The position numbers were made by a program, and so were the translations under genes. 64,000 bases of DNA from Fimbriosthenelais zetlandica (taxonomy: Eukaryota): the NCBI GenBank assembly GCA_977030845.1, contig OZ365118.1, forward strand, positions 8,370,001 to 8,434,000, given 5' to 3'. Position 1 is the stretch's first letter, and each line of letters begins with the position of its first letter. The notes under the pieces are model-generated. The model saw only the letters and a program-made list of their open reading frames with translations, was not told where the DNA came from and made no database searches. Positions 6,701 to 53,878 of the stretch are shown in pieces.

Positions 6701-7763
6701 TATTAATAAAGGATGACGGTTCATTAAATTCATTAAATTTATTAATAATATAATACTTTTCTCATGAATTGTTTGTGAATAATAAAATCTGAGGTACTGA
6801 CCCATTTACTAGCCATGGATCCATGGCTACCGTCCTGTCTAGGACAGATGACAGCATCCAGAAAAGACAGGGTATGATGGCCAGAGAAAACACCTGAATA
6901 TAGGCGTGTAGGGACCAATGTGTTAATGCTTTGGCCAAATCCTGAAAGACAGAAATAGGTGAAAAGAATTCCTCTTAAGGTAATTTATTCCCCTAAATAT
7001 TGTTAATCCATAGGATTAGTATAGGTGGAAAATATGGAGTCGGGAGGGACATATTATGTTCAGTATTTGCCCTAGGGAAATACTAGTTGACCTAGGTTCC
7101 TGTAACATTAATTCACAATGGGAATACAATTATTTTGGGGGTATTTTTTGTTGGCTGGGGTGGAATAGATATAGACCTGCCCTCGGTAAGTTCTATCCAT
7201 TTCCTACGAGACAACATGTACATTTTTCGGCCTGTTTATTGCAGATTACATGTAGTTGAGTTGTCGTTGTCTTGCCACAGTGTATAATAAAGGCCTTTAG
7301 CTTTAATAAGGTCTACCACAGGCCTTCTATGCGAGTAGGCCTTGACAAGTTGTGGCATCTCTGACTGATCCTTACCTCAGTCCTAAGTGAGAGGCCACTA
7401 TTGAGGAAAATAATAGACACTGCCACATATTTGATTGTTATTTCGGGAAGTAATGGACCTGAAAATATAAAAAAGAAAAACAATGTTTAGCGGCTTTAAA
7501 ATTAACCTTAATGATCATAGCTATAGAGGATCTGGATCCATTTTATTTTATAAAACGAACAAGTAGACAATAAATAGGCCTAATGATAATCAAACAGTAG
7601 GGTAATCCAAGTCTATAGTAATATGGAGTTTTCTATGCCTAGCCTATAGTCTATACTCACCCCCAGAAGCACCAATATGAGGTTGAAGATGGGCTAAGAT
7701 GATTACTATAATTATACCCAATATGAACCAATTCTTTCGTAATGTGCGCTTGAGGACCTCCAT
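3722..7763 (-). CDS. SLC10A7: Sodium/bile acid cotransporter 7; exons 7661-7763, 7376-7458, 6802-6941, 6231-6306, 6094-6132, 5939-5974, 5434-5582, 4882-4982, 4378-4503, 3722-3924 (3' end uncertain)
   Basis: The spliced ORF reads [18 protein letters not shown]..., [104 protein letters not shown]. These are hallmark SLC10A7 motifs and the phases are consistent. Confidence 0.92.
4576..4790 (+). mobile_element. tRNA-derived SINE copy (head missing; core and tail present)
   Basis: It shares GACTGGGTGAGGTATCATG...GATACCTCAGTGAGGCAGCACTATAAAAGAGC...GGCACCGTCATGATATAACTGAAAAA...GAAAGTGACGTT with the copies near 23.4k, 37.6k, 40.7k, 45.2k and 60.0k. Confidence 0.85.
6447..6619. mobile_element. Tc1/mariner (pogo/Tigger-like) MITE
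   Basis: TA|CAGTAAAATCTCCA ... TGGAGGTTTTACTG|TA, with TA on both sides. Related pieces lie near 22.9k, 29.6k, 33.5k, 47.5k and 53.5k. Confidence 0.75.
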
Positions 7764-8375
7764 TCTGAGATTTCTCTTCGAAATGATGCCTAGATGTCAA
7801 ACGATCCTGCAACAGAAACAGTCTATGAATCATTGTTGACACTATGTTACTGCTAGTGTTAATAGCAGTGTTACCATTAGGGTTACTAACCCTAATGCCA
7901 TGGTAATATTTATAAGCAGTCGATCTATACATTACCATTAGCCTACGGTACTGAGGCATTAGGGACCTGGGTTACTGACCCTACATGGTGATGGACCCTA
8001 TAATTATTATATACATGTATGTATAGAAATATCCCCCCAACCCCTTTATGACCATGTTCATCTATAGGGAATACATAGGGAATACTAATATAGGGAAAAA
8101 ATATGCAGTCGGGAGGGACATATCATGTCCAGTATTTCCCTGACCCTCTGTGTGGCTGTAGGCCTAACATTATTTTGCATAGAATGATTGTTGACTTGAG
8201 GTATTTTTTGTTGGTTGGGATGGATGCTCTGTCTAGTCAGGTAGGCTAGGTGGTAGGCCCCTGGCACTTCGGCCAGTTCAGGTGGACGCCCTCGGGACAC
8301 CTCCACCCTCAACCATGGGACATACCACCGACCTGCCCTCGGTCGGTTCTATCTATATTCCTATAGGTCAGGCAC
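7020..8375. repeat. Two copies of a dispersed repeat (about 7020-7225 and 8062-8375)
   Basis: Both share AAAATATG(G/C)AGTCGGGAGGGACATAT(T/C)ATGT(T/C)CAGTATTT and GACCTGCCCTCGGT..GTTCTATC.AT in the same orientation. Confidence 0.7.
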
Positions 8376-9173: not shown

Positions 9174-11141
9174 ATGTCCGACGATAAAAAGGTAAGGCCT
9201 AGATATTCATGATCTGTAAACTCTTAAGCTTGTATATATTGAAGAAAGTGTTTATTTCGATCAATAGTTACACTGTCTCATGTGGTTTAACTGCAATGAT
9301 GATATTCGCCGGTTCCCTTGCCGCTTTATAATATCCTAACCCACGCCGTACTTCATGTACTTGTTCCCACCCTTTGTACGTTAACATCAAGTTACAATTA
9401 ACTCATAATTCCCCAATCTTCATCTGAGAAACACAATGTAGAAGTGGTCATGGTATCTTGAGACATTACCGTCGTAAATCGGTTAGATCCTACGTGGAAA
9501 GATGTAATCGTAGACGAGTCGTTGGGCCCATCACCACGCGGGCGTTTTGAACAGGAAATGCAGGGTTGGGCGGGGGTTTCAATTGAATTCTGAAGTAACA
9601 ATATTTTTTATTTTCCGTCAGATGGTTTCCATGTAATGAAGTAGATTTATAAGTTGGACGAGTACTGTGAACATAGATAATGTATATAAGATATCTAGGT
9701 TAAAATAGTGAACAGACATTCCTCCCTCTAAACTAAAGGCTATGATGATATAGGCCTATTATTAGGCCTATACTATAGGCTAACTTTATAAGGCAGGGAA
9801 GAACCCCAAGGCAAAGGCAACGAAATGGATTGTCCCGCAATTCAAGTCCATTCTATTTCGTCTTCCTGTTCAGTGTTGTTACCAGTCCTTCTAGTTAGTG
9901 TGTGCGAGTAGACTAGATCTAGTTCTGGATCTCATAGTCGTACAGTACTAGACAATGGTAGAAAGCTGCCCATCTTCGACTTGTGTAGTTAGCTGATCTT
10001 AGCTTAACCGTTTAACTTTAATTGCTAAATAAGATGTGAAATTATTAGGTCTATAGTCTCCACAGCTCTTCTTCTTCGCTTTGTCTGGTAGACCTTTCTT
10101 TGTCCCTAGGGCTAGGCAGCAGGCTATTTGGGCATATTGTCTGCATCTAGTTTTTTAAAGCTTGTGTTATGTTGTTGGATATTAATTATGTTATTTCTTC
10201 TCATTTTAAAGCCTGAGGGAAGCACTGAACACATCAACCTGCGGGTGATTGGTCAGGATGGACAAGTTGTCCACTTTAAAATCAAGAAAAATACTCCACT
10301 CCGCAAACTGATGACAGCCTTCTGTGAGAGGACTGTAAGTGTATCTTTGTTTTACATACCTTTACTTAAATCTGAAATTTACTCAAATATTTCTAAGTAA
10401 TGGGTCATACAATGTACAAAAGTAACAACCAGAAATTTAGCTGAGTGAAAATTTGAATAATTTCTCTTTATGATCCCCCCACCCCCATTATTTTGCTCTG
10501 ATTAATAACGAGAACCTTGGTGTTTCTTTTTCAGCAACTTCGCCTGGAGTCCTTGAGGTTTAGATTTGATGGGCAGCCAATAAATGAGACTGACACACCT
10601 TTACAGGTAAGATACCTTTCCTGTAACGATAATGTTGGAATCATTTAATGTAAATAGGACTTTAAAGTATTGAAAGAAAACCTGTAATAATATCCAGATT
10701 ATTCTATCTAATTCCGGGCCATACTTACCACTGAGTCCTTGATACGATCAGAAAATAGAGATTTTGGAATTTAAAATTAACGATATCATATGGTAACACC
10801 CCAGAATTTATAGTAAAGACTTTTTCACAGTTCTCGAGGACTTGTATATTATATACAGGGTTCCCAGCGACTCTAGAAATCGGGGAAACCCTGGAAAATG
10901 AGTTTCACTTTTTCCAGATAGGGAAAACTCCGGGAATTCCATCTCCTGGAATTTATATAGGGCTAGCTTTGCCCTGTGGCCTGTCCCCACAATTATTTCC
11001 TTCCTCTACACACATTTTACTGTACGTCCCCGAGTTCTTAATACATATTCATGCACTGTTCCTTTCTTTTCCTCACAGCTTGAGATGGAAGATGGTGACT
11101 CCATAGATGTCTTTCAACAACAGACCGGAGGATTACGATAA
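9174..11141 (+). CDS. SUMO: Small ubiquitin-like modifier (SUMO2/3/Smt3-type), 91 aa; exons 9174-9191, 10212-10334, 10535-10606, 11079-11141
   Basis: MSDDKK|[41 protein letters not shown]|[24 protein letters not shown]|[20 protein letters not shown]. It ends in the QQTGG diglycine motif followed by a 2-aa propeptide. Confidence 0.96.
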
Positions 11142-17631: not shown

Positions 17632-17753
17632 AGTGCTGTCATTTTGTCATGCCCCGTCTCACCACCTCGGGTGTATTTATTATGTGTGTATTTTATATTA
17701 GTGTATGTGTAGGGTAGCTGCCTTAGCTGTGGCTGGCTGGTTTGTAGAATGAT

Positions 17754-30350
<12,597 letters not shown>

Positions 30351-30733: not shown

Positions 30734-33700
30734 ATGTAAGTAGTTTTTCTACAGTCTGGGTTTTTCATATTTGTGTGATTAAGTGATTACTTAATTTGTT
30801 AAAGTGGTAGGGACGTATAGGCTCGATATCAAGTCTTTGATGTTTAAAATAACCTTTTCTGCACCGTTTATGATCACTGAGTGAGTGAATGATACTGATA
30901 GTGTCAATGTGAGTGTCCATCCCTGGCCTAGGGCTAGGGCCTAGGCTAGTACGGGTACTACTGTAATAGGCCTACTAACACTGATACGTAAGTAGTATAG
31001 GCTAGGGCTTTGGGCCAATGCACATCAACAACTGCCAGTACCTTAGACAACTGACCCCTGAATAGACAAATGTAAAACCTCACCCTAAAAGTTGTTCACT
31101 AGTTTGAAATAATAAAAAAAAATACTATGGCTATGCTGTCTAGGCTAGTAATATAGAAGAGAAGATAAACAGCACTAAATTTATCATTAAAATTCTCTAA
31201 AACACATAAAGGACTCAGCCTCTTAGAGAACAGTATTTTTTTTTAAATCGCCACGGAATAGTGTCTTGCACACTTTGTCCCAAATTATTTATAGTAGGCT
31301 ATGAGAAATATTATTAAAGTAATTTTTCTAAACAGGTCGGAATATTGGGTATCCCAGGCTAAAAAGTTTTGTGAATTCTGCAAGTGCTGGATCGCTGACA
31401 ACAAACCTGTAAGTATGCAGTGACATGAAATTTAATATTGTCAATCAGATGTTAATGTAGGCCCATTAAGCCTATAGGCGCCAATCATATAATAATCACA
31501 TTATTAAATGTCGATTTAACTACACGCCATTAAATTTCATTTGTTCATCCAGAGCCGAGATTTTCACGAGAAGGGAAAAAAGCACCAGGACAATGTCAAG
31601 AAAAAAATAGACCAGGTGCGGAAGAAGTCGATGAAAGATGCCAAAAAGGAAGAGGAAATGGTTGATTCTATACGAGAAATGAATGAGGTATGGTAATTTG
31701 AATTATATTTGGGCCTATTGATTTATTATCTCGTGTCTTTCATCGTTCGTAAGCCTATTATAGTCCCAGTTTGCCCATTGAATATGAATTAAAAGATCTA
31801 AAGCTAAAGCTAATTAGCCCAGAAGAATATTTCAGGGAGAAATAATCCAGGACTTAGAAAGATATCTCTGCAATGAACTTATGAATGTATAATAGGATTA
31901 AGTATTGAAATATTTATACTTTATTAATGGGATTATATGACTGCCTTTTATCTTTTTCAGAATGCACTGAAAGCTTTCAAAAAGGACCTTTTGCAGAATC
32001 CCTCTCTGAGAGCACAATATGGCATCGATTTAAAACCCAAAGGTGAGCAGGGTGGATGTAGTAGTCATCAATATTCACACATAACAGTTTGGAACATTTA
32101 TTGGTGATTTTCTCTAATACTATCTAAAAATCGTAAAAAAGTTGAGAAACATTGACCCTTCAAATATAAGACCAGTACTAGGCTAGCACATATTGATTAT
32201 AAATTTTGATTTACAATCCAAAACTGAGCCTCAATCACAGTTTCCTAACTTTCTCAAAAAAGTTTAGAAACATTGACCATTCAAAAATAAGACCAGTACT
32301 AGGCTAACACATATATATTGATTATAAATTTTGATTTCAGAATCTAAAAATGAGCCAGTGTATGGCCCAATGCCTCAACCAGAGACGTCTAAAGAGGCAA
32401 CCCAAAGTGAAGAACCGGAAGTTAGTGAAAAAGAAAATACATCAGACGAAGAAGAAGAGGGGGAGGAGGAGGAAGTGGAGGAGCCGGGGACGTGGCATAT
32501 GGCGGCCTCCGATAAAGGTTACCCTTACTATTGGAATGACGCTACATCAGGTATGGCTATGATTACATTTTAAGACAAATTCCTATGGATTAAAAACCAT
32601 TTTTGGGCCTTAAGTTTACAATCTTTCGATCTCAATTGGCTTGAAGCGTTTTCTTGTTAGTTTCATTGTCATATATTTCTAAAGTGTTGGTGTTTGAATA
32701 TTTAGCCTAAATATAACTACATGTACATTGTATTTGGCTAATAACTTACATCGTTAATTACAGAAGTAACATGGGTTGCACCAGTTGGATATTTGAAACA
32801 ACAAGGAATCCCCCGTGAAGAATACGATAAATACAGACCAGAAGAGGTGAGAAATACATGTTCGACATTTTTCAACTCTTTAAATAAAATAAAAAATTCG
32901 ATAGTGTAACATGTAATGAAAAAATCGATTAGTTAAATATTACTGCAATCGATTAGTTAAATTTTACTGCAACAAAAGTCGGATTTTCCTCTATGTTTAC
33001 AAGCAAGGCACGTTTTTAAAAAGATTTTCCTCATTTTAACAGGAAGATAAAAAGCCCAAAACCAAAAAGAAAAAGAAGTCTGTACCGGCCAATAGCACGC
33101 CACCGCCGGTGGGACCAGAGACAGGGGAGACAGGGGAAACAGAGACAGGGGAACCCGAGGCGAAAAAACCAAAACTAGAAACTATAGAAAATACCACACC
33201 AGAGGAGATTCCTAGCGTTAGTGTACTACCCGAGGACATACCACTACCTCCTGATCCTAGTGACGAAACGACAGATGAAGTGAAGGAAGAGCAAAAGGAA
33301 GGGGCAGATGATGAGAAGGAGGAAGAAGAGGAGAACAAATCGCATGAATCAGAAAAAGCGCCCAAATCGCATGATTCTTATGGTACATGGGAACAAGTGC
33401 AGGTTATTGAAAAGTAAGTAGGATTTTGGTGGAATTAAAAAAGAGAGGACTCGGAGGAAATTTCAAATTTTTATCATAATGTACAGTAAAATGTCCATTA
33501 GAGAACACTACTCATCAATTGAATATATTGGACGCTTTTTCACAGTGCCAGGTTCTGTAGGTATCTTATACAGCTCCCTGTGATTAAGAACACCTATAAT
33601 AAACACTTTATAAATCTATTCTTTATCCATAATAATTCTCTCATAAAATGCCACTTTTAATTTGTGTTTTTCAGACCGCCTCAAATCGACCTGGGATTAC

Positions 33701-37200: not shown

Positions 37201-38663
37201 GGGAGAAATAAAGAGGGAGACAGAGAAATGGGAAATTAATAAGAGCAGCTCAGGGGAGCCCAGATATTCATTCTAACTAATTCAGATTTTTTTTTAAACT
37301 TTAAATTTTCTCAAGGGATGCCAAGAACCCACCTTAGAGTCCGAATCGTGGAGACTTTTCCCACTGTCTTGTTCTAGTTGGACCTGTGTGATCCCGACTC
37401 TGTGTGATATGTACTCTTGCCGATCCCTAGCATTCTCCGTTGTAAAGGAAAGGTGACCTTTTGTTGCGATTGGCATACGTTGTTGGGTTATTTGGTAGCC
37501 CGCCTATAAAATGAATACATGAATACATGTATTTTTTTTAAAGACCAAGGATATTTAGAATTGATTGAATGGGGTTTAACGTCACTTTTGAACAATTTTT
37601 CAGTTATATCATGACGGTGCCTACTTGTGACAGTGAGCCCAATGCTCTTTTATAGTGCTGCCTCACTGAGGTATCATGTCGCAGGCACATGACATGATAT
37701 CTCACCCAGTCACAATATACTGACACCGGGTTGACCAGTCCAGGATATTTAGAATGACTTAAAAAGGCATTATCCAGACATGATTATAATTATAAAGATT
37801 TGACTGAAAGAACACTGTATAAATTAGTGTCCCTCCACAGAGGAAATCCCTCTTAATGACTCTATGCCAGTAGGGCCTCCTTTGTTAGTCCTATACCAAA
37901 ATTGTTTAAAATTAAAAAGAAAACTTACAGGTAAATCTGCATAGAAGTAGTGTTTTCTGTCAAACTTGGAAACCATGTTCACGTGGCAGTTGAGGGCCAA
38001 AGCTGTCATCACTGCAGCTTCCACACATCTTTGGTTGAGAACCTGAAACGTGAAATAAATTATTTAAATCAAATGGAGATGCAGCCATTTTCTTCTAATT
38101 CATCAAAATGAATAATTAATTTATACTCACTGGAAGAGTTCCTGGTAGGGCAGCATCCATGAAGGAAACTTGGTTATTGATGGGTGCAGAGAACTCAGTT
38201 CCAGCTGCAGAGAATAGCTTGGCCTTGGAGCTAATCTGGGCATGGACTTCAAGTCCAATAACGCTTTCCCATTGACGTCTATAGAAAATAGAAAAATATT
38301 TGAAACATTAGATTAGTGATTAGGTCTGGCGACTACACTAGTCCCTAGGCTGTAATGCATAGGCCTTGAAACTTGATTACTGTAATTTTTATTTTTTTTA
38401 GGATTGTTAGGATTACTGTAATATTGATAGGTGTAGAGCCAGAGGGATACTACTACTACTCAGTACTAGACTAGAGGGCCAAGTTTGATTGGGAAAAATT
38501 TCATTTCTTCCTAAATTAAACAAAATGACATTAAGTGCCATAGTCGCATAGATTCTAATCAACTAATCACATAGGCCTACCTAGCATTTTCCTGTGCCTT
38601 CGCAGCTCGTTGAGAAAAATATCTCAACTGACAAAAAGAAATTTTAAGGCTCTGCCTCAGCAT
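34283..38663 (-). CDS. GATB: Mitochondrial Glu-tRNA(Gln) amidotransferase subunit B (PET112); exons 38581-38663, 38131-38278, 37929-38042, 37333-37503, 36931-37081, 36410-36523, 36217-36301, 35771-36002, 35063-35199, 34843-34921, 34622-34753, 34283-34426
   Basis: Basic presequence [24 protein letters not shown], then [110 protein letters not shown]. Confidence 0.95.
36567..36900. repeat. Intronic tandem duplication, about 170-bp unit, 2 copies
   Basis: ACAAACCATGGAAATT...GGAAGGGAGGTTTTA...AAGGCACTTATACAAATTAGTCAA at about 36567 and 36737. Confidence 0.85.
37561..37742 (-). mobile_element. tRNA-derived SINE copy (5'-truncated)
   Basis: Near-identical to the copy at 59953-60223 across the core and tail. 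Confidence 0.85.
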
Positions 38664-38826
38664 GGCGAAAATGGTAAAAGTTTCATAGCGAGAAGGACTT
38701 ACAACGCCTTGTGATTTCCGGAGCAGCCGCTACATAGACACGTGGCAGCACCTCCCGGTGAAAACTAATATACGGAACTTGCCGGAACTTGCCGGAGTTC
38801 CCCGAAGATGACGTCAGTAGGAGAAC
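38664..38826. promoter_or_regulatory. Compact bidirectional promoter GATB / FBXW7
   Basis: 163 bp between the two ATGs; E-box CACGTG 38739-38744, tandem CGGAACTTGC/ETS-like repeats, perfect CRE TGACGTCA 38809-38816. Confidence 0.65.
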
Positions 38827-41800
38827 ATGGCAGCTGAGGTGACCACTTCGTAAGTGGATGCAGCAAGTAAGTAGCTTATTTATGTGTCTTACCTCTACAT
38901 CCTTGGCGATTTGAGTACGCAGTCAAGCACAAATTGTTTCTAACTAGTTGGTCTTAGTTCGGGAGGCGAATATAGACTATTTGAAAGGGGATCTCTGCAA
39001 TTTAATGCCATTCAAAGGGCCCCCGTCCGCAAATGAAATGTGTGTCGGAGACGGAGTGGGATTAGATTGGGTGCTGAGCCTGAGGAGACTCGTGTTTGGG
39101 TAGAGGATTTCAGCTTTTTGCAATGATATGTTTAGAAAAGTAAACCATAGAAAATGTGCATTTAGTTGCATGAGAAAGCATGAGCTGATTGCCTCGGAAG
39201 TATGGGAGAAAGCTTCGTCCAAAAGTCAAAGCGAGCTGAGGGCTTCTGATGATTGATCAGTGCCCTGGCCTGAGGCCTGACCCCTGTCATTACAGAAATC
39301 TATATAGATCTAGGCCTAGGCCTACACATCTTATCTGTCTCTCCAAACCCACACCTCTATTCCACAAATTCTATTTCTTAAAGTGTCATAATTATAGGCC
39401 TTCCTACCTCCACAATTTTCTAAGTGATCAATACAAAAACAATCTTACAAGATGTTTAAAGGGATTTTGTTAAAATATTCTCTTCGCCCTCGGGCCCTTT
39501 AAAGCAGTTGAAGTAAATTCAACTGTATATATTTTATATATTTATATATATTTTATATATTTTTCAGGAATCTGCCGACTTATAATGCTGCTATGGCGAG
39601 TGGAAAAATAGACATAAATTCAGCTTCACTCGAGCAGTTGGAATGCCTCGTTGGAATAGGACACGCCAAGGCTCAGATTGTTATAGAAGCTAGGAAGGTA
39701 GGCTATGCTTGTTCATTTTGCCAAAATTTTTGGGGCATAGACGTCTATGTCGCTACCTAATATGATAAAATCATCCTTTAGATCTAGATAGTTTAAATAT
39801 TTCCTGAAATTCCTCTATTTTATATTTGCAACCAGTTTGGAAAATGCAAGGGCTGAAAATCACTTTGGCCTACTATGTCTGAGAGGCTCTCTGGTTGGGA
39901 TTCTGAACACCCAATATGACTATCTATAAATCATTTCTGTGTCTTACATAGAATCTTTACTATGATTTTGTGGGTAATTTTTCAGAATTAGATATCTACA
40001 TGAATATTTATGCATCCAAAATCCCTATACTATATCATCAACATATCTTTAGGCTATAATCTGTGGTGATAGGCTAGTCTGTTTATTGTATGCCTCATAT
40101 AAATCTTTTTCGGTGTCCAACTATAAATCTTTACTTCGATTATCTTCGATTATCTTTTATTCGATTTCATATGCATTGTACCTCCGAACATTTACATCAA
40201 CATATTAGATTCTAGTCTAAGGTTATAGTCTGTCTATTATAAACCAAATCTAATTCTTTCTTTCCACAGACTGCTGGGGGGTTTAAAAATGTGAGTGACT
40301 TGATCAAGATTCCTGGAATAGGTCGTGTTATATTAGACCTGAACAATGATCTGCTTACGTGTATACCTCTACCTTCACCCAGCACGAGGCGGAGTCCCCG
40401 TAACCATGAACGGTACGTTAATGCTGCTAAATAATTACCTTGCTTCCCGTTATGCACATTTACAATAGATACTGCTGATGGTCTTACATAAGCTGCTTGC
40501 CTTCTACAATAATTAATTCCTACTTTGGCAAATTGTCAGTGTCCAATGCGATCAGAGCTTCTATAATATCAGGGTGTAAGATGTTCGATATTGCATGATG
40601 CCATCCCAATTTGCGATTAAAACTACCGGTACCTCTTGTGGGATGTATTCCTACCTTTGTGTCACTAAAAATTGGGGTACACATAAAAGAGAATAGGGCT
40701 CAGTGTCACAAGTAGGCACTGTCATGATATAACTGAAAAAGTATTGAAAGTGACGTTAAACAACCATGCAATGACAATGAGACATTTTGACAGTGGTTCT
40801 GATATATTAATAATCATTTTTGTATAGGAGAGAGACGCGGAGTTCCGCCCGTTTAGAGGCGAGTTCCAGCAGTTCCTGCTCGTCGGGAACCTCGTCCTCC
40901 AGCACCACCTCCAGCGTGGGTAGTTCCAGCCTCATCACTCCAGACTCGGACAGGGAACACCTGCCTACAGCGGGAACCTCTCACACCTCTCCCTCTAAAC
41001 AAGAACCCGCAAAAGATGCGGATAAGCCTAAAGATGAATCCCCAGCCTCAGCCCCTGGGGATGAGAGGGGCGGGGATTTGGAGGAAGAGGAGGAGGGGGA
41101 AGATGAAGATGTTCTATTAGACTCAATCAGTAATGGTGATAGTGACAATGTGGTACAAATGGACCTTATAGCCGGGGATGGTGACAACCAGGCCACGGGG
41201 GATACCCCCAGGGAATCCCCGAGTCAAGGGGAGGCAGAGGATGACGAGGAGGAAGGGGAAAAAGAAGGGGAGGACGAGGAGGAAGAAGAAGAGGAGTTGG
41301 AGGGAAGTGGGTTACCGTGTCTTAGGTCTAAAGGATTACCCAGCACTGATAAACAATGGGTAAGTCAAATTCTTTAATTAATTTTGTTAAATTGTTAAAT
41401 TCCCTGTATACCACGAGGGAAATGGGATATTAATCATTACTGACTATCATGATGAGGAGTTATATAATGTAAGTATGTAGCTATAATGTTGTAAATTATT
41501 TAAAATATAAATTTATTTAAAAGGTACAGTCTACATCTTTTATTTTCTAGGAGTTAGAATTTATTAGTACAGTACCATATATAATTACATTAAATTTCTC
41601 TTTCCATGGCTTGCCATGAACAAACGCCATAAACACCTGCATAAGATAAAGTATAAGAATAAAACTGGAAACTTGAATGATTATGATAAAGACTTGAGGA
41701 TCGAGAACCAGAATAGTGATAAAATTATTTTTTATAAATCCATGATTTTTCAGATGAAAAGAAAATCCGAGACCAGTGTAGACCTGAAGGCCATGTCCCC

Positions 41801-44800
41801 AGGCAAGAAGCCCTGCCGTAACTCCTCCGTCGACAGGTATATATTACAGTTCATATACACTTTAATTTTAAGGGATAAATAAGTAGTTTTACTTATTTAT
41901 TTTGATGACATCGCAATATAAAATATATGGTATCTTAATTAGTGATTAACTTTCATGTTTTTTTATTTTCATGTAATAATTGTGCATTGCAGCTCGGACA
42001 GTGCATTGTTTAGAGCTATATTTGTCTTTTTGAATGTAATAATTGTTGGTGATCTTTCAGTTCGCGCAGTGTGACTGTCAGCTCGGGCAGTGCGTTGTTT
42101 GGATCTATGTCTATATTTAATTTTAATGTAATTTTGGTGATCTTTCAGTTCGTGCAGTGTCAGCTCGGGCAGTGCATTGTTTGGAGCTATCCGAGCTAGT
42201 AATTCTCAGGCTACAGCAGCTTCAGCGAGGCGGCGGATACCGTCCAGAGCCAACCCTCCGCCAGAACTAGCTGACTGGCTGAAAACTTTCCAAGTAAGTT
42301 ACCAATCCATTCGTCAACTCACTATTATTCCCTCCACGGTGTGTCGCTAAAAATGCAGTACGCGGTTAATTGAAACCTTTCTAGGAAAAATTTTACCATA
42401 TTTAAACTATAATCTGAACTAGCAATTTTAATAAATAATTTTGGGGTTGAGAGGTATTTTCATGTGTTAATAAAAGTTCCTAAATTGGTTTGCATAAATA
42501 CACCTAGCATGTTCAATTGAAATCCACTTGTATATTTGTAAACTAGAAAAGTTACATGAGAAATTCTATGATCTATTTTAAGGAATACTTCCATTTACGT
42601 TTTGCGAATTTATTATATAAAATCCTGTGATTTTGTTTCCAGGAATGGTCACACGCTGAGCGGCTGATGGGACTGGATGAGCTAATCGCCCAATGTGAAC
42701 CTACCTTAGTACGTCATATGATGGCAGTTATTGAACCACAATTCCAGAGAGATTTTATATCATTACTACCTAAAGAGGTCGGTATTTCATTAACTTTTAT
42801 TGTGCCACATGGACACTTTGTTACACTGAATTCTCATAATTATAGAGCAATGTAATATATACGATTTTCCTTTATTTCCTTTGTTTAACATTCTATTAAT
42901 TTCATTATAAATAATTGTCATAATGTATAGAATGTGGGTTGATTTCTATATTATTCATTTCAGCTGGCCCTCTACGTGCTCTCCTTCCTGGAGCCTAAAG
43001 ACTTACTACGGGCGGCGCAGACTTGTCGTTACTGGCGACTTCTGGCCGAGGATAACCTGCTGTGGAGGGAGAAGTGTCGCGAGGAGAACATTGACGAGGC
43101 CCTCGTCTTCGGCCATCGTATGAGGAGAAAGTCTGCCGGCAGCAGTCCCTGGAAGGTGCTCTACATGCGACAACACCAGATTGAACAAAACTGGCGGCGC
43201 AAAACCATCCGGCCATGCAAGGTAAAATCATGAGTACACTTTAAATACAGGTAATCAGTAGCCTATACACTAAATAAGTTAAAGTAGCCTTTACAGGAAA
43301 TTTACCTTTACAGGAACTTTTATCTAAAGAAAATGAGTACATGTACATGTACCATTATCTTAAGAATATGTGTAGTCTTTAAGTTTAGATTATGACTAAA
43401 TTAGTAAATGAGTAGCCTTTAATGGAACTTTTATCTAAAGAAAATGAGTAGTTTTATCTAAAATAAAATGAATAGCTCTTATCTAAAGAAAATGAATAGC
43501 TATCTAAAGAAAATGAGTGTCGATAAGCAAAGAAAATGAGTAGCGTTTGCAGGAAATGAGTAGCTTTTATTTATCTAAAGAAATGAGGACTTATTAGAGA
43601 ATCATTACTTGAGTCGTTCTTTTTTACAATGGTTTTTTTTTTATCTCTTTTAGGTGCTAAAAGGTCATGACGACCATGTGATTACATGTCTCGAGTTTCA
43701 CGGCAACAAAATTGTAAGTGGATCCGATGACAACACGCTCAAAGTTTGGTCAGCTATCACTGGGAAGGTAACATGTCTTCTTTATCTTAACTTACTAAAA
43801 TATTTAATATATTTCTTGTCGTTTCCTAACTTTAAACTGTCTTCTGTACATATTTGGATAGGGGGTGACCCTTGACCAAAGAAAATGAGTATCTGTTATT
43901 ATCTGAAGAAAGTGAATTTCAGAAATTTAAAATGAGTTGCGTTTACAGAAAATGGGTCATTTTTTAACAAAATTATTAGTTTTTTTGTATCTGAAGAAAT
44001 GATGTACAGAAATTGGAAATGAGGAAATGAGTAATATTTAAGGTGGCTCGTACCATTTGCCATGTGACCATGGCGTTGCAACGCCTTTCTCTCGGTTTCA
44101 CGGGTTGCCACTTTCGCCTTTTCCGCTCCAAGCGTAAACTTCCTGCTTGCGAAAATGGCAGCACACTACATGCGATTACGGGGGAAATTTGCTTCCCAGA
44201 AGAAACTAAACAAGGTTAACCACATTCTGGAAGTCCGCCATGAAAAAGCTATATCCAATATACAAGACTACGTTCATTTGGATCACTGTTACGGCTGTCC
44301 AACCTCAGAATTGAACATTGCGTCGGAGGTGACAGTTGAGACTACCGACCCGGACTTGTGGGGTATTTTTATAATAAATGTTATTTAGTACAAGTTGCAG
44401 TCGGTCAATATTTTTTTTGGGGGGATATATGGTGGCTAACAATATAAATAACTTCCTGGCACATTTTCAGGATTTTCTGTCTCATGGATTTTCTTGAGGA
44501 GCCTTACGGGGATAAAAACCTGCTATTTTGCACTGAAGTCAATGGGCGGACTGTGAAATTCTTTAAAAATTGACAAAAAAAAAAGTAGACGGCCAATTGA
44601 CTTCATGTTTTGTATTCTGCCTCCTGCGACACTAGGCTACAACATATAAAAAAATTAGGGTTTTCTATCACAAACTTTAAGAAGGTATGAGCCACCTTAA
44701 CTGGGGAAAATGAGTAGCCATTTATTTAAGCTCTCATTAAAATACCTGGAATATTTCCATTTTTGCTTCATTTTTCTGCCTTCGTGTTCTTTCAGTGCCT

Positions 44801-47094
44801 ACGTACGTTGGTTGGACATACGGGAGGGGTATGGTCATCACAGATGTCTGGTACCCTCATTATCAGCGGCTCTACTGACCGCACCCTCAAGGTGTGGAAC
44901 GCTGAGACTGGACAGTGTGTACACACCCTGTACGGTCACACCTCCACCGTACGGTGTATGCACCTACACAATAATAGGTCAGTATGGCTGTTCAAGATTC
45001 AAAAATATTTATTTCCCGCGTTAGAAAATATTACGTAGTCAAATGATTTAGCCTTAGGCCCAAACATATCACACACAATAAAAAGCAGGTCCCCGAGGGC
45101 AATGGGTAAAATAAGAAAAAATATACCTAATACTTCATCCGCTCACTTACAATACGTATGTGGAGGCCACCGCAGTGGTATAATGGTTAGAGTGTCTGCC
45201 CTGCGTGTGGAAGGTCGGCAGTTCGAACCGCAGCTCTCTCGCTTGGCACTCAGCAAGGGGCTGACTGTCCCAACTAGGCACCGTCATGATATGTAACTGT
45301 GAAATTGTTGAAAAAGGCGTTAAACCCCATTAAACAAACTATTACTGACTAATCTTACAGAATGTGCCATTTGAATGTTGCTATATTGAATGTAACCATG
45401 TATGAATGTATTTCAGGGTTGTCAGTGGGTCTCGGGACGCCACGTTACGTGTCTGGGATATTGACACGGGTCAGTGTTTACACGTATTGATGGGACACGT
45501 AGCGGCCGTCAGGTGTGTACAGTACGACGGTCGGCGCGTCGTCAGCGGTGCTTACGACTACATGGTCAAAGTGTGGGACCCAGAGACGGAGACCTGTCTA
45601 CATACATTACAGGGTCACACCAATAGGGTATACTCACTGCAGGTACGTCTTATACTTTATATCACAACTTGGCTTGTTAATTACACTCCCAAACACGCTG
45701 ATCTGGCCGTTGCATTTTCAACAATAGTGAAACCAAGGAAACTTAATGGGCATATTTTATAAAGTTTTGAGGTAGAAGTTGTGATATAAATATGGAATAC
45801 GACTCGACATCGATCTGCTCGTAGCAAGTCACTCAAGATTATCTGCATGTTTTCACGCATTGTGCGACCCATCTGCTCTCACAGATCAACGTCTCGTTGT
45901 ATTCCATATTATAAGTAGTCTTTCTAGTAGGGTTAGTAGTAGTCTTAGTAGTAGGGTTTTCTGTGGCGATTTCACTGATACGGAACAATTGGTATAAGGT
46001 GATTTTTCCAGGTAGATCTGACCTTAGATAGTTGATTTCACTACAAAAATAGCTGGCTGATGTCTCAGTAGAGAGAAATCAATTCCTAGTAACGGAACCG
46101 TCTACTGGTTTTCTTGTCTGTCTTAGGATATTGCACATATGGGCACTAAATTTTAACAGGGTACATTTCTGATACCAGGCTACAAAGAAATCCTTACTTG
46201 TGTTTCATTTCCCTTTACCCTTTAACAATTTAAACAATTTTAAAAATTTAGTTTGACGGGACACACATCGTAAGCGGTTCACTGGACACTTCTATCCGTG
46301 TGTGGGATGTAGAGACGGGGAACTGTCTGCACACACTGATAGGTCATCAGTCACTCACGTCTGGTATGGAACTCAAAGATAACACACTCGTCTCAGGTAA
46401 CGCTGACTCGACCGTCAAGGTATGGGACATCACCACAGGTCACTGTCTGCAAACATTACAAGGTACCTCGTCTTTCTTTTTACTTTATTATTTTATTTGC
46501 AAAATATATATCACTGTTCGCTTAGAAAATTTCCAATTTTGGCAGCTGCCTTTTGTCCTTGATAATTCAGGGTTACCATGCGTTATTAAATTTTGTTACA
46601 AATTTTTAAAATTTCGGAATTTTTGTCTATACGGTCTTAAATTTGTTTTAAGTTTAATTTTGTTCAGTAAGGTATTATGTCCCTGAAATTATTGCAAGGA
46701 AAGTTTTCTGAAAATCAAATAACCGTATTTTTTATTGATAATTAAAACCAATTTCCCTCCGTTTCCAGGTACCAACAAACATCAGAGCGCCGTTACATGC
46801 CTACAGTTCAATAAGAAATTCGTCATCACTTCCTCGGACGACGGCACTGTGAAAATCTGGGACTTGAAAACCGGCGAGTTCCTACGTAACTTGGTGGCGC
46901 TGGAAAGTGGGGGCAGCGGGGGCGTGGTGTGGCGTATACGGTGTAGCAACACCCGCCTTGTCTGCGCCGTTGGCAGCCGTAATGGCACGGAGGAGACGAA
47001 ACTGTTAGTTCTAGACTTTGACATGGACGAGTCTTCTAACCAATGCAACCAATCTAGCGCCATTCAAGGGACAAAGAAACAAGTGGCCATGTGA
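38827..47094 (+). CDS. FBXW7: F-box/WD40 protein 7 with N-terminal helix-hairpin-helix domain and acidic region; exons 38827-38849, 39568-39697, 40270-40412, 40828-41359, 41754-41836, 42149-42293, 42643-42777, 42964-43221, 43654-43767, 44796-44977, 45417-45642, 46252-46462, 46769-47094
   Basis: Common region [21 protein letters not shown], dimerisation domain [31 protein letters not shown]-box [25 protein letters not shown], and a WD40 propeller nearly identical to vertebrate FBXW7 ([12 protein letters not shown] ... [17 protein letters not shown]). All junctions are GT-AG and in frame. Confidence 0.96.
40680..40770 (+). mobile_element. SINE 3' fragment
   Basis: ATAAAAGAGAATAGGGCTCAGTGTCACAAGTAGGCACTGTCATGATATAACTGAAAAAGTATTGAAAGTGACGTTAAACAAC matches the family tail. 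Confidence 0.75.
41985..42190. repeat. Tandem duplication (about 88-bp period) of an FBXW7 acceptor plus exon start
   Basis: GGTGATCTTTCAG|TTCG(C/T)GCAGTGT...CAGCTCGGGCAGTGC(G/A)TTGTTTGGA at 42061 and 42149, with a partial third copy near 41993. Confidence 0.85.
43320..43590. repeat. Degenerate tandem repeat TATCTAAAGAAAATGAGTA
   Basis: About 7 diverged copies in an FBXW7 intron. Confidence 0.75.
44038..44700 (+). mobile_element. Internally deleted TTAA-targeting DNA transposon (Kolobok-like) retaining a 5' ORF
   Basis: TTAA|GGTGGCTCGTACC ... GGTATGAGCCACC|TTAA (12/13 TIR, TTAA TSD, GG...CC termini). It contains ORF 44155-44388 and an internal inverted repeat GAAGTCAAT/ATTGACTTC. Confidence 0.75.
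45165..45339 (+). mobile_element. SINE with tRNA-like head and deleted central core
   Basis: A box (AGTGGTATAATGGTTAG) and B box (GTTCGAACC), then CTCGCTTGGCACTCAGCA, joined directly to the tail TAGGCACCGTCATGATAT...GGCGTTAAACCCC. Confidence 0.8.
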
Positions 47095-51200: not shown

Positions 51201-51641
51201 ATTTGATTTTTCCGCCTATAGGGCTACCGTAGGCCTACATAGGCCTATATATCTTTCAATTTCGGCCAAATTGGAGAAAAATGAAAATTGATTTGTAATA
51301 AGCAAAATAACCTTCATAGGCCTGTGTCTACAGGCCTTCACAGAACTCCATGATCACCCCCCTCTTCCTCCCACAGCCTATCACTCTCACCCCCCTAGAT
51401 ATTTAGATCTAGTTAGAAATTTAGAAGGCCCGGTTAGTAGGCCTACATATTTTTGGAGGTTTGGCAGCTATCCGCCAGATGTCCTGCTTGTCGCCTGTTA
51501 TCATTCTTATCCGCTATTAGACTGGCGCTGTAATCGTTATTTCGTGACCTCACCAAGCACCCGACCTCCTTCAGCCGGCTCTCGCACGTGTCCACGTTTC
51601 CCCCTTCCTTTTCACCACTCCTCTCCCAGGCGTCCGGGCGT

Positions 51642-53878
51642 ATGATTGGAACACTCCTCGCATTCTTTGCTCAATTTTCACCTACCATCATGGCCAACCG
51701 AGAAAGAACTTTCATCATGCTCAAGCCTGACGCCGTCCAGCGTAATCTGGTGGGCGAAATTATCTCCCGCTTCGAGAAGAGAGGCTTCAAATTGGTGGCC
51801 ATGAAATTCATGATGGTAAGTTGGTCCTCTTTGTCATTTTTCAATATGGAGTTGGCGACCTGTCTGACTGTCCGTGTAGTCTCCTTCCTACCAGAGTTCC
51901 TCTAGTTGAAAGTCTAGATTTATTCCACACAAAAACTTATTTATTTCTTTGACCACGTACCCTATTCATATTGACCAATTTTATTTTGACGTTTCCCTAG
52001 AGTTTAAATTATTTATGATCCTAACTACCGGCCCGGTAGACCCGGTGGGCGGTCGGCTCGCCGTACATGGCAATGTCTAATTTTCTCCTATTATCGTTCA
52101 CAGCTGTCACGCGTGGACTCTTGATTTTCTGGTTATCCTGGCCTATTTTCATATTTAAAAAGCCATTATTTTTCCCAAATACACTGGAAAAGGTATCAAC
52201 TAAGGCGTATTCATTCATTTGAAATGAACCACACGTTTATTAACCTCGTTCGTGTTCATAACTGCTGGTACCGGTACATCCTATTGGCAGTATTGCAATT
52301 TACCTCTATTATCGCTCAGAACTGTCACTTGTTGCAGATAAGTTGCTATTCTAAAAGTCACCCCACTGGTGACTTGTCAGACAAAACATGTCTATGGTCA
52401 GACTTAGCTGACTGACTTGTTGCTATTGCACAGTCACCCCCCTCACTGCCCTGTCAGACAGACTTAGACTTAGCTGACCGACTTGACACTTGTTGCTATT
52501 CCGGGTATTTCACAAAGTCTTATCTCAATAAAAAAAAAAAGTGAAAATTTAACTTCTCTCATCCTTTGGGTCCCCAACTCTGCATGAATATGTTTATAGC
52601 TGCTCAGAACTTGGTCCCTCTTTTTACCATCTACGAGTCATTTAAATTAAATGGTACTTCGTACTACTACCAGTACTGACAGCCAGTAGGCCTACTTGAG
52701 TGCATGATATTTGATTTGAATCTCTTCTTTCGTCTCAGGCCCCCAAGTCTCTCCTGGAGGAGCACTATGGCGAGCACAAGGGTCGTCCATTCTTTGACGG
52801 ACTGGTCGGCTATATGGCATCTGGCCCAGTTGTTCCCATGGTAAGATTTACTTTAATTTTTTCATTATTAAGTTTTGTAAACTTTAACTTTGATTTTAAT
52901 TTGGTCCATTATTGGGAAGAATTTTCTAATCGTTATCTAGGAAATAGAGCTGTAGAGGGGCTCCTTTGATATATCATTGACGTTTATTACCGGTACAGTA
53001 CTAATATTTGTTGAGGTTTTGTATTTCAATTCTTTTTAGATGTTATTATTTTTGTCGGTTTTCTCGTTTTAGGTGTGGGAGGGTACTAATGTGGTTCTTG
53101 CTGGCCGTACTATGATGGGTGCCACTAAACCCATGGAGTCTGCACCTGGTACCATCCGTGGCGACTACTGCATCGATATTGGAAGGTAGGTTCATTATTC
53201 TTGGTTAGTTAGTCATTCCTAAGATTTTTTTACACTTTTGACGTCTATCTAGATTAATGAAATAAAAATTGACTGATTTCTTTAAAGAAATATTTCAGTT
53301 TAATTTCAACTTAATTTAAGTATGAAGAACAATATTTCAATGTTGAGAATATTCCCAGTAATGAAACTAAATCAACCATCCCTACCTTTTCTAAAAAAGT
53401 AAAATCTAAAGTATGGAATCCGAATTTTTTCAAATTGTACAATGCAAAAATAAAGCTTTTCAAATGCCATTCCAGTACACCTGTTTATCAAATTTTAATA
53501 TGAAAACCCACATGAAACCTTGCCCAGGCTCGGTTATCATTCTACAGTCAAACCTGTATAAATCCACCATCCTTGGGACCCAACGAAAGTGGTCGCTTTA
53601 TAGAGGCTCATCACTTAGAGGAAAAAATTCGGGACCGGGGAAAACAAGTGGTCGGATTATCCAGGTGGTCTAGTTAAGAGGTGGTCGCTAAGTCAGGTTC
53701 GAATGTATATTATAATTAAAACATTTGAGTCTAATATTGTGATGAATTATTTCCCCCCAGGAATATCATTCACGGTAGCGATGCTGTTGAGACTGCTAAC
53801 AAGGAGATCGCTCTCTGGTTCAAGGAAAACGAGGTAGCTTCCTGGACCCCCACCTCAGACGCCTGGATCTACGAATGA
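51642..53878 (+). CDS. NME: Group I nucleoside diphosphate kinase (152 aa from ATG 51690; 168 aa from upstream in-frame ATG 51642); exons 51642/51690-51815, 52739-52840, 53073-53185, 53761-53878
   Basis: [86 protein letters not shown] (catalytic His), C-terminal WIYE*. Confidence 0.96.
53543..53707. mobile_element. Tc1/mariner (pogo-like) MITE in NME intron 3
   Basis: TA|CAGTCAAACCTG ... CAGGTTCGAATG|TA. Confidence 0.65.

Follow-up and report, generated by a model that had tools for sequence, protein, structure and literature searches.

The stretch of DNA analysed here (the window) comprises 64,000 nucleotides of Fimbriosthenelais zetlandica (contig OZ365118.1, positions 8,370,001 to 8,434,000 of the forward strand) and holds, on its plus strand, a gene for the F-box protein FBXW7, at whose 5' end two small exons encode a helix-hairpin-helix (HhH) domain. 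The first of these, exon A (39568-39697), is preceded by a pyrimidine-rich acceptor, carries an ATG at 39593, encodes the conserved start together with the first HhH motif, whose hairpin G-I-G occupies residues 21-23, and stops in phase 0 before the donor GTAGGC. Exon B (40270-40412) follows the acceptor CAG, encodes the second HhH motif (P-G-I-G), an invariant Cys and a tail of Pro, Ser and basic residues, and ends in phase 2 at the donor GTACGT. Exon C (40828-41359), entered in phase 2 and left in phase 0, is open over 177 codons up to a final W and leads from a basic patch (R-RETRSS) through a Ser-rich stretch into an acidic linker; only the frame set by exon B is open in the window, the other two containing 17 and 3 stops, and a Pfam scan of this exon returned no match. 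Downstream, on the same strand, follow exon D, the common exon of FBXW7 (41754-41836, with MKRKSE at its start and the donor GT at 41837), exon E (42149-42293), the exon of the dimerisation domain or D-domain (42643-42777), the F-box exon (42964-43221) and several WD40 propeller exons (43654-47094), which were recognised from their open reading frames (ORFs) and Pfam WD40 matches and reach a stop near 47094. A frame check reproduced from the sequence the coordinates and translations of exons A and B given in a preliminary description of the window, and bore out its GT-AG junctions with phases 0, 2 and 0 and no intervening stop; the exon joins proposed there agree with these frames, with the amendment that exon D ends at 41836, its donor lying one base earlier than a naive reading would place it.

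The gene was assigned as an FBXW7 orthologue because Pfam recognises both an F-box and WD40 repeats and because the closest natural solved match is human FBXW7. The F-box exon matched PF12937 (F-box-like) with 52.8 bits and PF00646 with 30.6 bits, and the WD40 exon at 45415-45642 scored 308 bits against human FBXW7 chains versus 200-204 bits against FBXW11/FBXW1A, the best natural solved matches being the human FBXW7 entries 2OVP, 2OVR, 5V4B and 7T1Y (E 8e-94 for 2OVP/2OVR). A Pfam scan of the D-domain exon found no matching model, yet this exon contains a 16-residue motif that recurs unchanged in the FBXW7 orthologues of the PMC12475580 supplement, and the MKRK junction of exon D matches the vertebrate and amphioxus FBXW7 rows of the alignment supplied with the same study. 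The gene thus combines the features tested for the FBXW7 group, namely an F-box, a WD40 domain closest to FBXW7, a D-domain directly before the F-box and the MKRK exon.

As a separate observation on this part of the gene, the acceptor region of exon E (41990-42204) is tandemly duplicated with a period of 82 bp and 79% matches according to Tandem Repeats Finder. By eye, three copies of the motif cag(c/t)tcg…cagtgc(a/g)ttgttt(a/g)ga(g/t)ctat, with the splice boundary after the first cag, were discerned at the acceptor and represent extra candidate acceptors, the last copy alone running on into conserved coding sequence.

Profile analysis of the two 5' exons revealed that exon A alone matches Pfam HHH_3 at 30.8-31.7 bits (curated cut-off 27 bits) over profile positions 3-35 of 65, and that exon B matches positions 38-64 of 65 at 15.2 bits, the two matches being collinear and complementary halves of one (HhH)2 domain. 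All eight orthologous exon A sequences match HHH_3. The spliced domain, assembled by script from five lineages and aligned by hhalign with small bacterial ComEA proteins, extended over 72 columns unbroken across the exon junction, with a probability of 99.4%, an E value of 7.5e-22 and 43% identity. Searches of solved structures in the PDB, for which single exons and five- to eight-sequence profiles were used, matched the exon A profile to ComEA 8DFK (E 9e-8) and to EEPD1 9YI2 (E 4e-7), and the five-lineage exon B profile best to EEPD1 9YI2 (E 4.5e-5) and also to ComEA 8DSS; ComEA 2DUY was among the further matches. The two exons adjoin in both templates, at residues 87-115 and 118-139 of ComEA 8DSS and at residues 60-89 and 93-132 of EEPD1 9YI2, and both hairpins read G-I-G in the window. 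At the level of sequence, these results confirm that exons A and B encode one ComEA/EEPD1-type (HhH)2 domain of about 66 residues and exclude a chance resemblance, in line with the HHH_3 assignment made beforehand: exon A lies above the family threshold and exon B completes the profile.

No second copy of the HhH domain was found in the 64,000-nt window, and an Rfam scan of it gave no match. When protein representatives were searched with exon A, the best 150 matches all carried several HHH_3 stretches each, and the ten longest of those scanned are multi-HHH_3 proteins of bacterial type, in part with LTD, PKD or SLBB domains, so that any single-domain orthologues would be masked among these matches. 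An atlas search with the same exon returned ComEA-type clusters only. In metagenome contigs, 39 loci with 44-66% identity were obtained, presumed to be ordinary ComEA-type genes with contexts uninspected; none of them is a close exon A orthologue, the loci not having been searched for FBXW7 exons.

For the comparison across lineages, the F-box exon was used as query and yielded 171 homologous exon ORFs, whose surroundings on long ENA contigs were walked upstream, and the fetched loci were scanned by tblastn and small hidden Markov models. Five lineages were available as DNA: the window, L040/L043 (two haplotigs of about 91% identity from one sample), L049 (conspecific with L047, L050 and a Joint Genome Institute metagenome contig), L051 (which continues L041 upstream) and L052 (which continues L044 upstream), whereas the loci L042 and L045 end short of the upstream region. 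In all five, exon A, exon B, a Ser-rich/acidic exon C and the F-box exon follow one another in this order on one strand, every junction is AG/GT with phases 0/2/0, and the ORF from the conserved ATG is free of stops; the MKRK exon D was detected in all but L052. Throughout, the frame set by exon B is the sole open one in exon C (2-32 stops in the other frames across the five lineages); the exon is nearly unalignable between lineages, retaining its basic start, its Ser-rich/acidic composition and a conserved end. The window and L040, its nearest relative here, agree fully in the basic motif across the B/C junction, …SPRNHE-R/RETRS… (the slash marking the junction), and their exons D and E show 93% and 86% identity, respectively. 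A sixth lineage, whose F-box exon is 55% identical, carries according to the gene table a 48-residue HHH_3 ORF 5.9 kb upstream of the F-box on the same strand, so that the HhH domain is present in all six lineages in which the upstream region was seen. There is thus strong support, from conservation and not from transcripts, for the HhH exons forming the in-frame N-terminus of FBXW7. The order, the phases and the continuous ORF in five lineages speak for the architecture put forward in the preliminary description, but its restriction to "this lineage" does not hold, as the HhH domain lies upstream of FBXW7 in six of six lineages, annelid-like and bivalve-like ones included.

The HhH codons differ between the window and L040 with a nonsynonymous proportion (pN) of 0.18 and a synonymous proportion (pS) of 0.90, the latter being saturated, and the introns are unalignable; between deeper lineages, 29-36 identities remain within the 66-residue HhH core. 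An alignment of eight exon A sequences (the five lineages plus P0273-P0275 from short contigs) showed D7, N9, A11, E17, L19, G21, G23, A27 and R34 to be invariant, hairpin 1 to read G-[IV]-G throughout and all sequences to open with M-A at the same place, within the conserved start context MAS-x-K/R-I/V-D-I/V-N, while all five lineages share the Cys that directly follows the domain. Judged by these substitution patterns, the HhH coding sequence is under purifying selection. Since an in-frame TGA sits five codons upstream of the MAS start in L051, the ATG at 39593 was taken as the conserved start.

A longer N-terminus was considered and rejected as the conserved one. A possible short first exon of FBXW7 (ATG 38827, donor GTAAGT at 38850, plus strand) joins exon A in frame in the window only, whereas in L051 a stop in the same frame precedes MAS and L040 has an acceptor of another phase. 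Apart from this, a short out-of-frame upstream ORF that begins a few bases ahead of the MAS start overlaps it in three of the five lineages (window 39585-39611, L049 8640-8672 and L051 4770-4812), and in L040 an upstream ATG is in frame with it (MRDGAMAS…). It is possible that the upstream ORF exerts translational control over an HhH isoform.

To assign the carriers to taxa, their F-box exons were compared by eye with the FBXW7 alignment in supplement 4 of PMC12475580, which gives assignments of moderate confidence. The F-box of L047/L049 shows the pattern FLEAKDLL…RLLAEDN…REESIDE-x-LVFGG…LSGG, as in the annelid Lamellibrachia, with which the window F-box has RLLAEDN in common. In L041/L042/L051, the F-box carries the insertion pattern …IDESLVFG-x-NRLRRRQ-x-SP, as in the bivalve Mercenaria, and exon C ends in SRIPVP…L/MKRK, as in Mercenaria, Mytilus and Octopus. 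With annelid-like and bivalve-like carriers, the fusion would therefore predate the annelid-mollusc split, provided that these assignments hold, and it is probably old, spanning Lophotrochozoa rather than one lineage. The invertebrate rows of supplement 4 appear to be trimmed to the part that matches the human protein and are uninformative on an HhH domain in annelids or molluscs. Lophotrochozoan FBXW7 gene models that start at or near MKRK may miss two to three 5' coding exons, located 3-14 kb upstream of the F-box exon.

Two further observations concern these loci. The last residues of exon C are conserved despite its fast evolution, with …K-x-W in three annelid-like lineages and …SRIPVPV…L in the bivalve-like one (window 41340-41359, L040 3227-3277, L049 about 10470-10504, L041 1590-1642); SRIPVP occurs also in mollusc, octopus and hemichordate FBXW7 in the published alignment and may represent an unrecognised short linear motif before MKRK. 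In the bivalve-like FBXW7 locus L042, the intron upstream of the F-box exon contains a 498-residue reverse-transcriptase-like ORF of a retroelement (6872-8368).

The best explanation of these data, which we consider highly probable, is that the HhH exons are the first coding exons of FBXW7 and represent an ancient, selected architecture, with DNA tethering as a proposed role. Exons A and B would then be the true first coding exons, with translation from ATG 39593, and the protein would comprise, in this order, the (HhH)2 domain, a basic patch astride the B/C junction, a long Ser-rich/acidic linker, the MKRK exon, the D-domain, the F-box and an eight-blade WD40 propeller. (HhH)2 domains bind the backbone of double-stranded DNA (dsDNA) via their two hairpins and without sequence preference, and the FBXW7 (HhH)2 would, by analogy, contact the phosphate backbone in a sequence-independent manner. 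FBXW7 dimerises via its D-domain (PMC12475580), and EEPD1 requires several (HhH)2 units, brought together in its dimer, to clamp dsDNA (PMC12988330). A D-domain dimer would accordingly produce an SKP1-cullin-F-box (SCF) complex with two HhH modules on flexible linkers, the avidity of which might suffice for chromatin tethering and might keep the substrate receptor near phosphorylated transcription-factor, replication or repair substrates. Added DNA contacts or a nuclear localisation signal (NLS) could come from the basic patch behind the domain, and the acidic tract could compete with DNA and thereby regulate HhH binding. We regard DNA tethering and action on chromatin-bound substrates as plausible.

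Several points weigh against this explanation. The joining of the exons is derived from comparative genomics, not from transcripts, and a homologous-protein search with the acidic exon C returned neither a match nor an RNA-derived ORF. The ATG at the opening of exon D could start an HhH-less product from other transcripts, and the amphioxus alignment rows, which are possibly trimmed, begin there. The taxon assignments, made by eye, are of moderate confidence. Concerning the function, hairpin 2 reads G-I-G in three of the five lineages and S-V-G or G-I-S in the other two, which makes canonical DNA binding through two hairpins less likely in the latter. Moreover, the isolated (HhH)2 of EEPD1 does not bind DNA stably without multivalency, and (HhH)2 domains also mediate protein-protein contacts and dimerisation, as in XPF-ERCC1 and Mus81-Eme1 (PMC12988330).

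From the ATG of exon D arises the first alternative, in which the HhH exons belong to a single alpha-like isoform, HhH-less FBXW7 is produced from other promoters or starts and the domain acts in a sub-pool, for example a nuclear or chromatin one. Vertebrate FBXW7 uses alternative first exons at the same junction, immediately before the common exon, exon D opens with ATG in four of the five DNA lineages as well as in the vertebrate and amphioxus rows, and the mollusc and octopus rows of the published alignment, although apparently trimmed, begin near MKRK. On the other hand, the C-D intron of the window, with 394 bp, offers no alternative coding first exon, and joint skipping of exons A and B, which would preserve the frame in the window but not in L040, would remove the conserved start. 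We consider this arrangement rather unlikely, although it is compatible with, and not opposed to, the HhH exons being the first coding exons of FBXW7.

A second alternative accepts the architecture and assigns the domain a role other than DNA binding, for example as a protein-protein or dimerisation surface, in the binding of RNA or poly(ADP-ribose) (PAR), or in intramolecular regulation of the WD40 domain or the F-box. The degenerate hairpin 2 of two lineages, the instability of isolated EEPD1 (HhH)2 on DNA, the dimerisation roles cited above and the long acidic tract adjoining the HhH domain are in agreement with such a role. Against it stand the closest relatives in every search, which are the dsDNA-binding ComEA family and the DNA-clamping EEPD1, as well as hairpin 1, whose G-[IV]-G is invariant in eight sequences together with the flanking Asp, Asn and Ala, and the basic patch that comes after the domain. 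On balance, a purely non-DNA role appears doubtful to a similar degree. That the HhH exons instead represent a small gene of their own, the relic of a transposon or non-coding 5' sequence, with FBXW7 starting in exon C or at MKRK, is very improbable: the link of exons A and B to exon C does stem from genomic rather than transcript comparison, and an unspliced exon B would stop seven codons on and give an HhH-only product of about 90 residues, but five lineages preserve order, phases and continuous ORF despite saturated synonymous sites and unalignable introns, exon C, read from its acceptor, has no open frame other than that of exon B and in most lineages lacks an early Met, a conserved basic motif lies astride the B/C junction, and neither transposon features nor further copies were found in the window.

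With the HhH exons taken as the first coding exons of FBXW7, a more far-reaching but tentative proposal, to which we give somewhat less than even weight, is that SCF-FBXW7 of annelids, molluscs and probably other Lophotrochozoa is a DNA-tethered E3 ubiquitin ligase, in which the two (HhH)2 domains of the dimer clamp dsDNA, the acidic linker gates this contact and substrates are degraded on chromatin, and that vertebrates and ecdysozoans lost or never gained the module. If so, substrates of the Myc, Notch intracellular domain, cyclin E and Jun type, or repair factors, would be degraded on chromatin, and vertebrates and ecdysozoans would rely instead on NLS- or PAR-based recruitment. FBXW7 is a major tumour suppressor and among the best-studied substrate receptors, and its route to chromatin substrates and DNA damage sites is debated. 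A conserved N-terminus of DNA-binding type in a large animal clade would offer a test case, set up by nature, of FBXW7 tethered directly to DNA, and concrete constructs for studying it are the HhH domain, mutants of its hairpins and deletions of the linker. The conservation of exons A and B further suggests that the FBXW7 N-terminus, usually viewed as a disordered isoform tag, can carry a selected module of folded-domain type.

As to the origin of the module, the exon B profile favours EEPD1 and the exon A profile favours ComEA, with similar scores, and an EEPD1-like, a bacterial and a transposon origin are all candidates. Some bacterial ComEA proteins contain a 14-residue run identical to the window, but horizontal transfer was rejected as unsupported by this identity, given that these matches were chosen by shared words among billions of sequences.

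Upstream of the gene, the start-codon exon of GATB (about 38560-38665, minus strand) lies head to head with FBXW7, and the gap of about 150 bp between the two contains a cAMP response element (CRE) TGACGTCA at about 38809 and repeated CCGGAACT motifs. Reading of the sequence suggests a candidate bidirectional promoter at 38700-38850 serving GATB on the minus strand and FBXW7. In L043, L049, L051 and L052, the 10 kb upstream of the HhH exon showed no GATB; on human 4q31, the two genes are likewise near neighbours. The remainder of the window contains ORF fragments of further putative genes, namely an AAA-ATPase with two Walker-type exons (110-930), a SUMO-like exon (10128-10400), an MBT/SAM-domain gene resembling L3MBTL/SFMBT (17698-29000, minus strand), an acidic WW-domain protein (32331-33417) and a nucleoside-diphosphate-kinase exon (51588-51905).

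To our knowledge, no HhH domain is known for vertebrate, fly, worm or yeast FBXW7 proteins. Full-text literature searches turned up no account of FBXW7 with an HhH domain, domain-architecture databases not having been queried, and automatic annotations may already list HHH_3 on some invertebrate FBXW7 entries, which would lower the novelty of the observation and not its biology. The novelty of the fusion, which the preliminary description had made dependent on the architecture not being documented as widespread, is thus upheld as far as the literature goes, yet the arrangement itself is broad, occurring in at least six lineages. The body of the window protein is that of vertebrate FBXW7 alpha (human 2OVR; orthologues Ago, SEL-10 and Cdc4), with the same D-domain, F-box and WD40 domain. 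The isoform-specific N-terminus of the alpha form joins at the same point directly before MKRK and likewise contains an acidic tract and basic residues, with exon C as the positional counterpart of the alpha-specific exon; the earlier statement that vertebrate N-termini are added at this junction agrees with the match of the MKRK junction to the published vertebrate alignment. Unlike the window protein, the vertebrate alpha N-termini are devoid of the searched HhH motif strings, which were absent from the full-length vertebrate FBXW7 rows in the supplement of PMC12475580, so that the proposed lack of the domain was corroborated for vertebrates and, for fly, by literature only.

Among bacterial proteins, ComEA (HHH_3; 8DFK, 8DSS and 2DUY), the competence DNA receptor, belongs to the same domain family as the window HhH, and single ComEA proteins are 55-66% identical to exon A. 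ComEA is secreted or membrane-anchored and stands alone, whereas the window HhH is fused to an SCF receptor, has a phase-0 intron between its halves and is predicted to be cytoplasmic or nuclear. The metazoan EEPD1 (9YI2) has an N-terminal (HhH)2 of the same type, and its likeness to exon B includes GGF-x-x-V-x-DL and the Cys after the domain. It differs, however, in possessing two tandem (HhH)2 units, a domain of EEP nuclease fold and a myristoylation, and in lacking F-box and WD40 domains, while the window FBXW7 has one (HhH)2 unit followed by a low-complexity linker and the FBXW7 domains; Pfam scans found no EEP domain downstream of the window HhH, which sets it apart from EEPD1. SCF receptors with a DNA module of their own are represented by KDM2A/KDM2B (FBXL11/FBXL10, with a CXXC zinc finger) and by the F-box DNA helicase FBH1. 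These follow the same design principle as HhH-FBXW7, with other DNA-binding folds and with leucine-rich repeats or a helicase in place of the WD40 domain.

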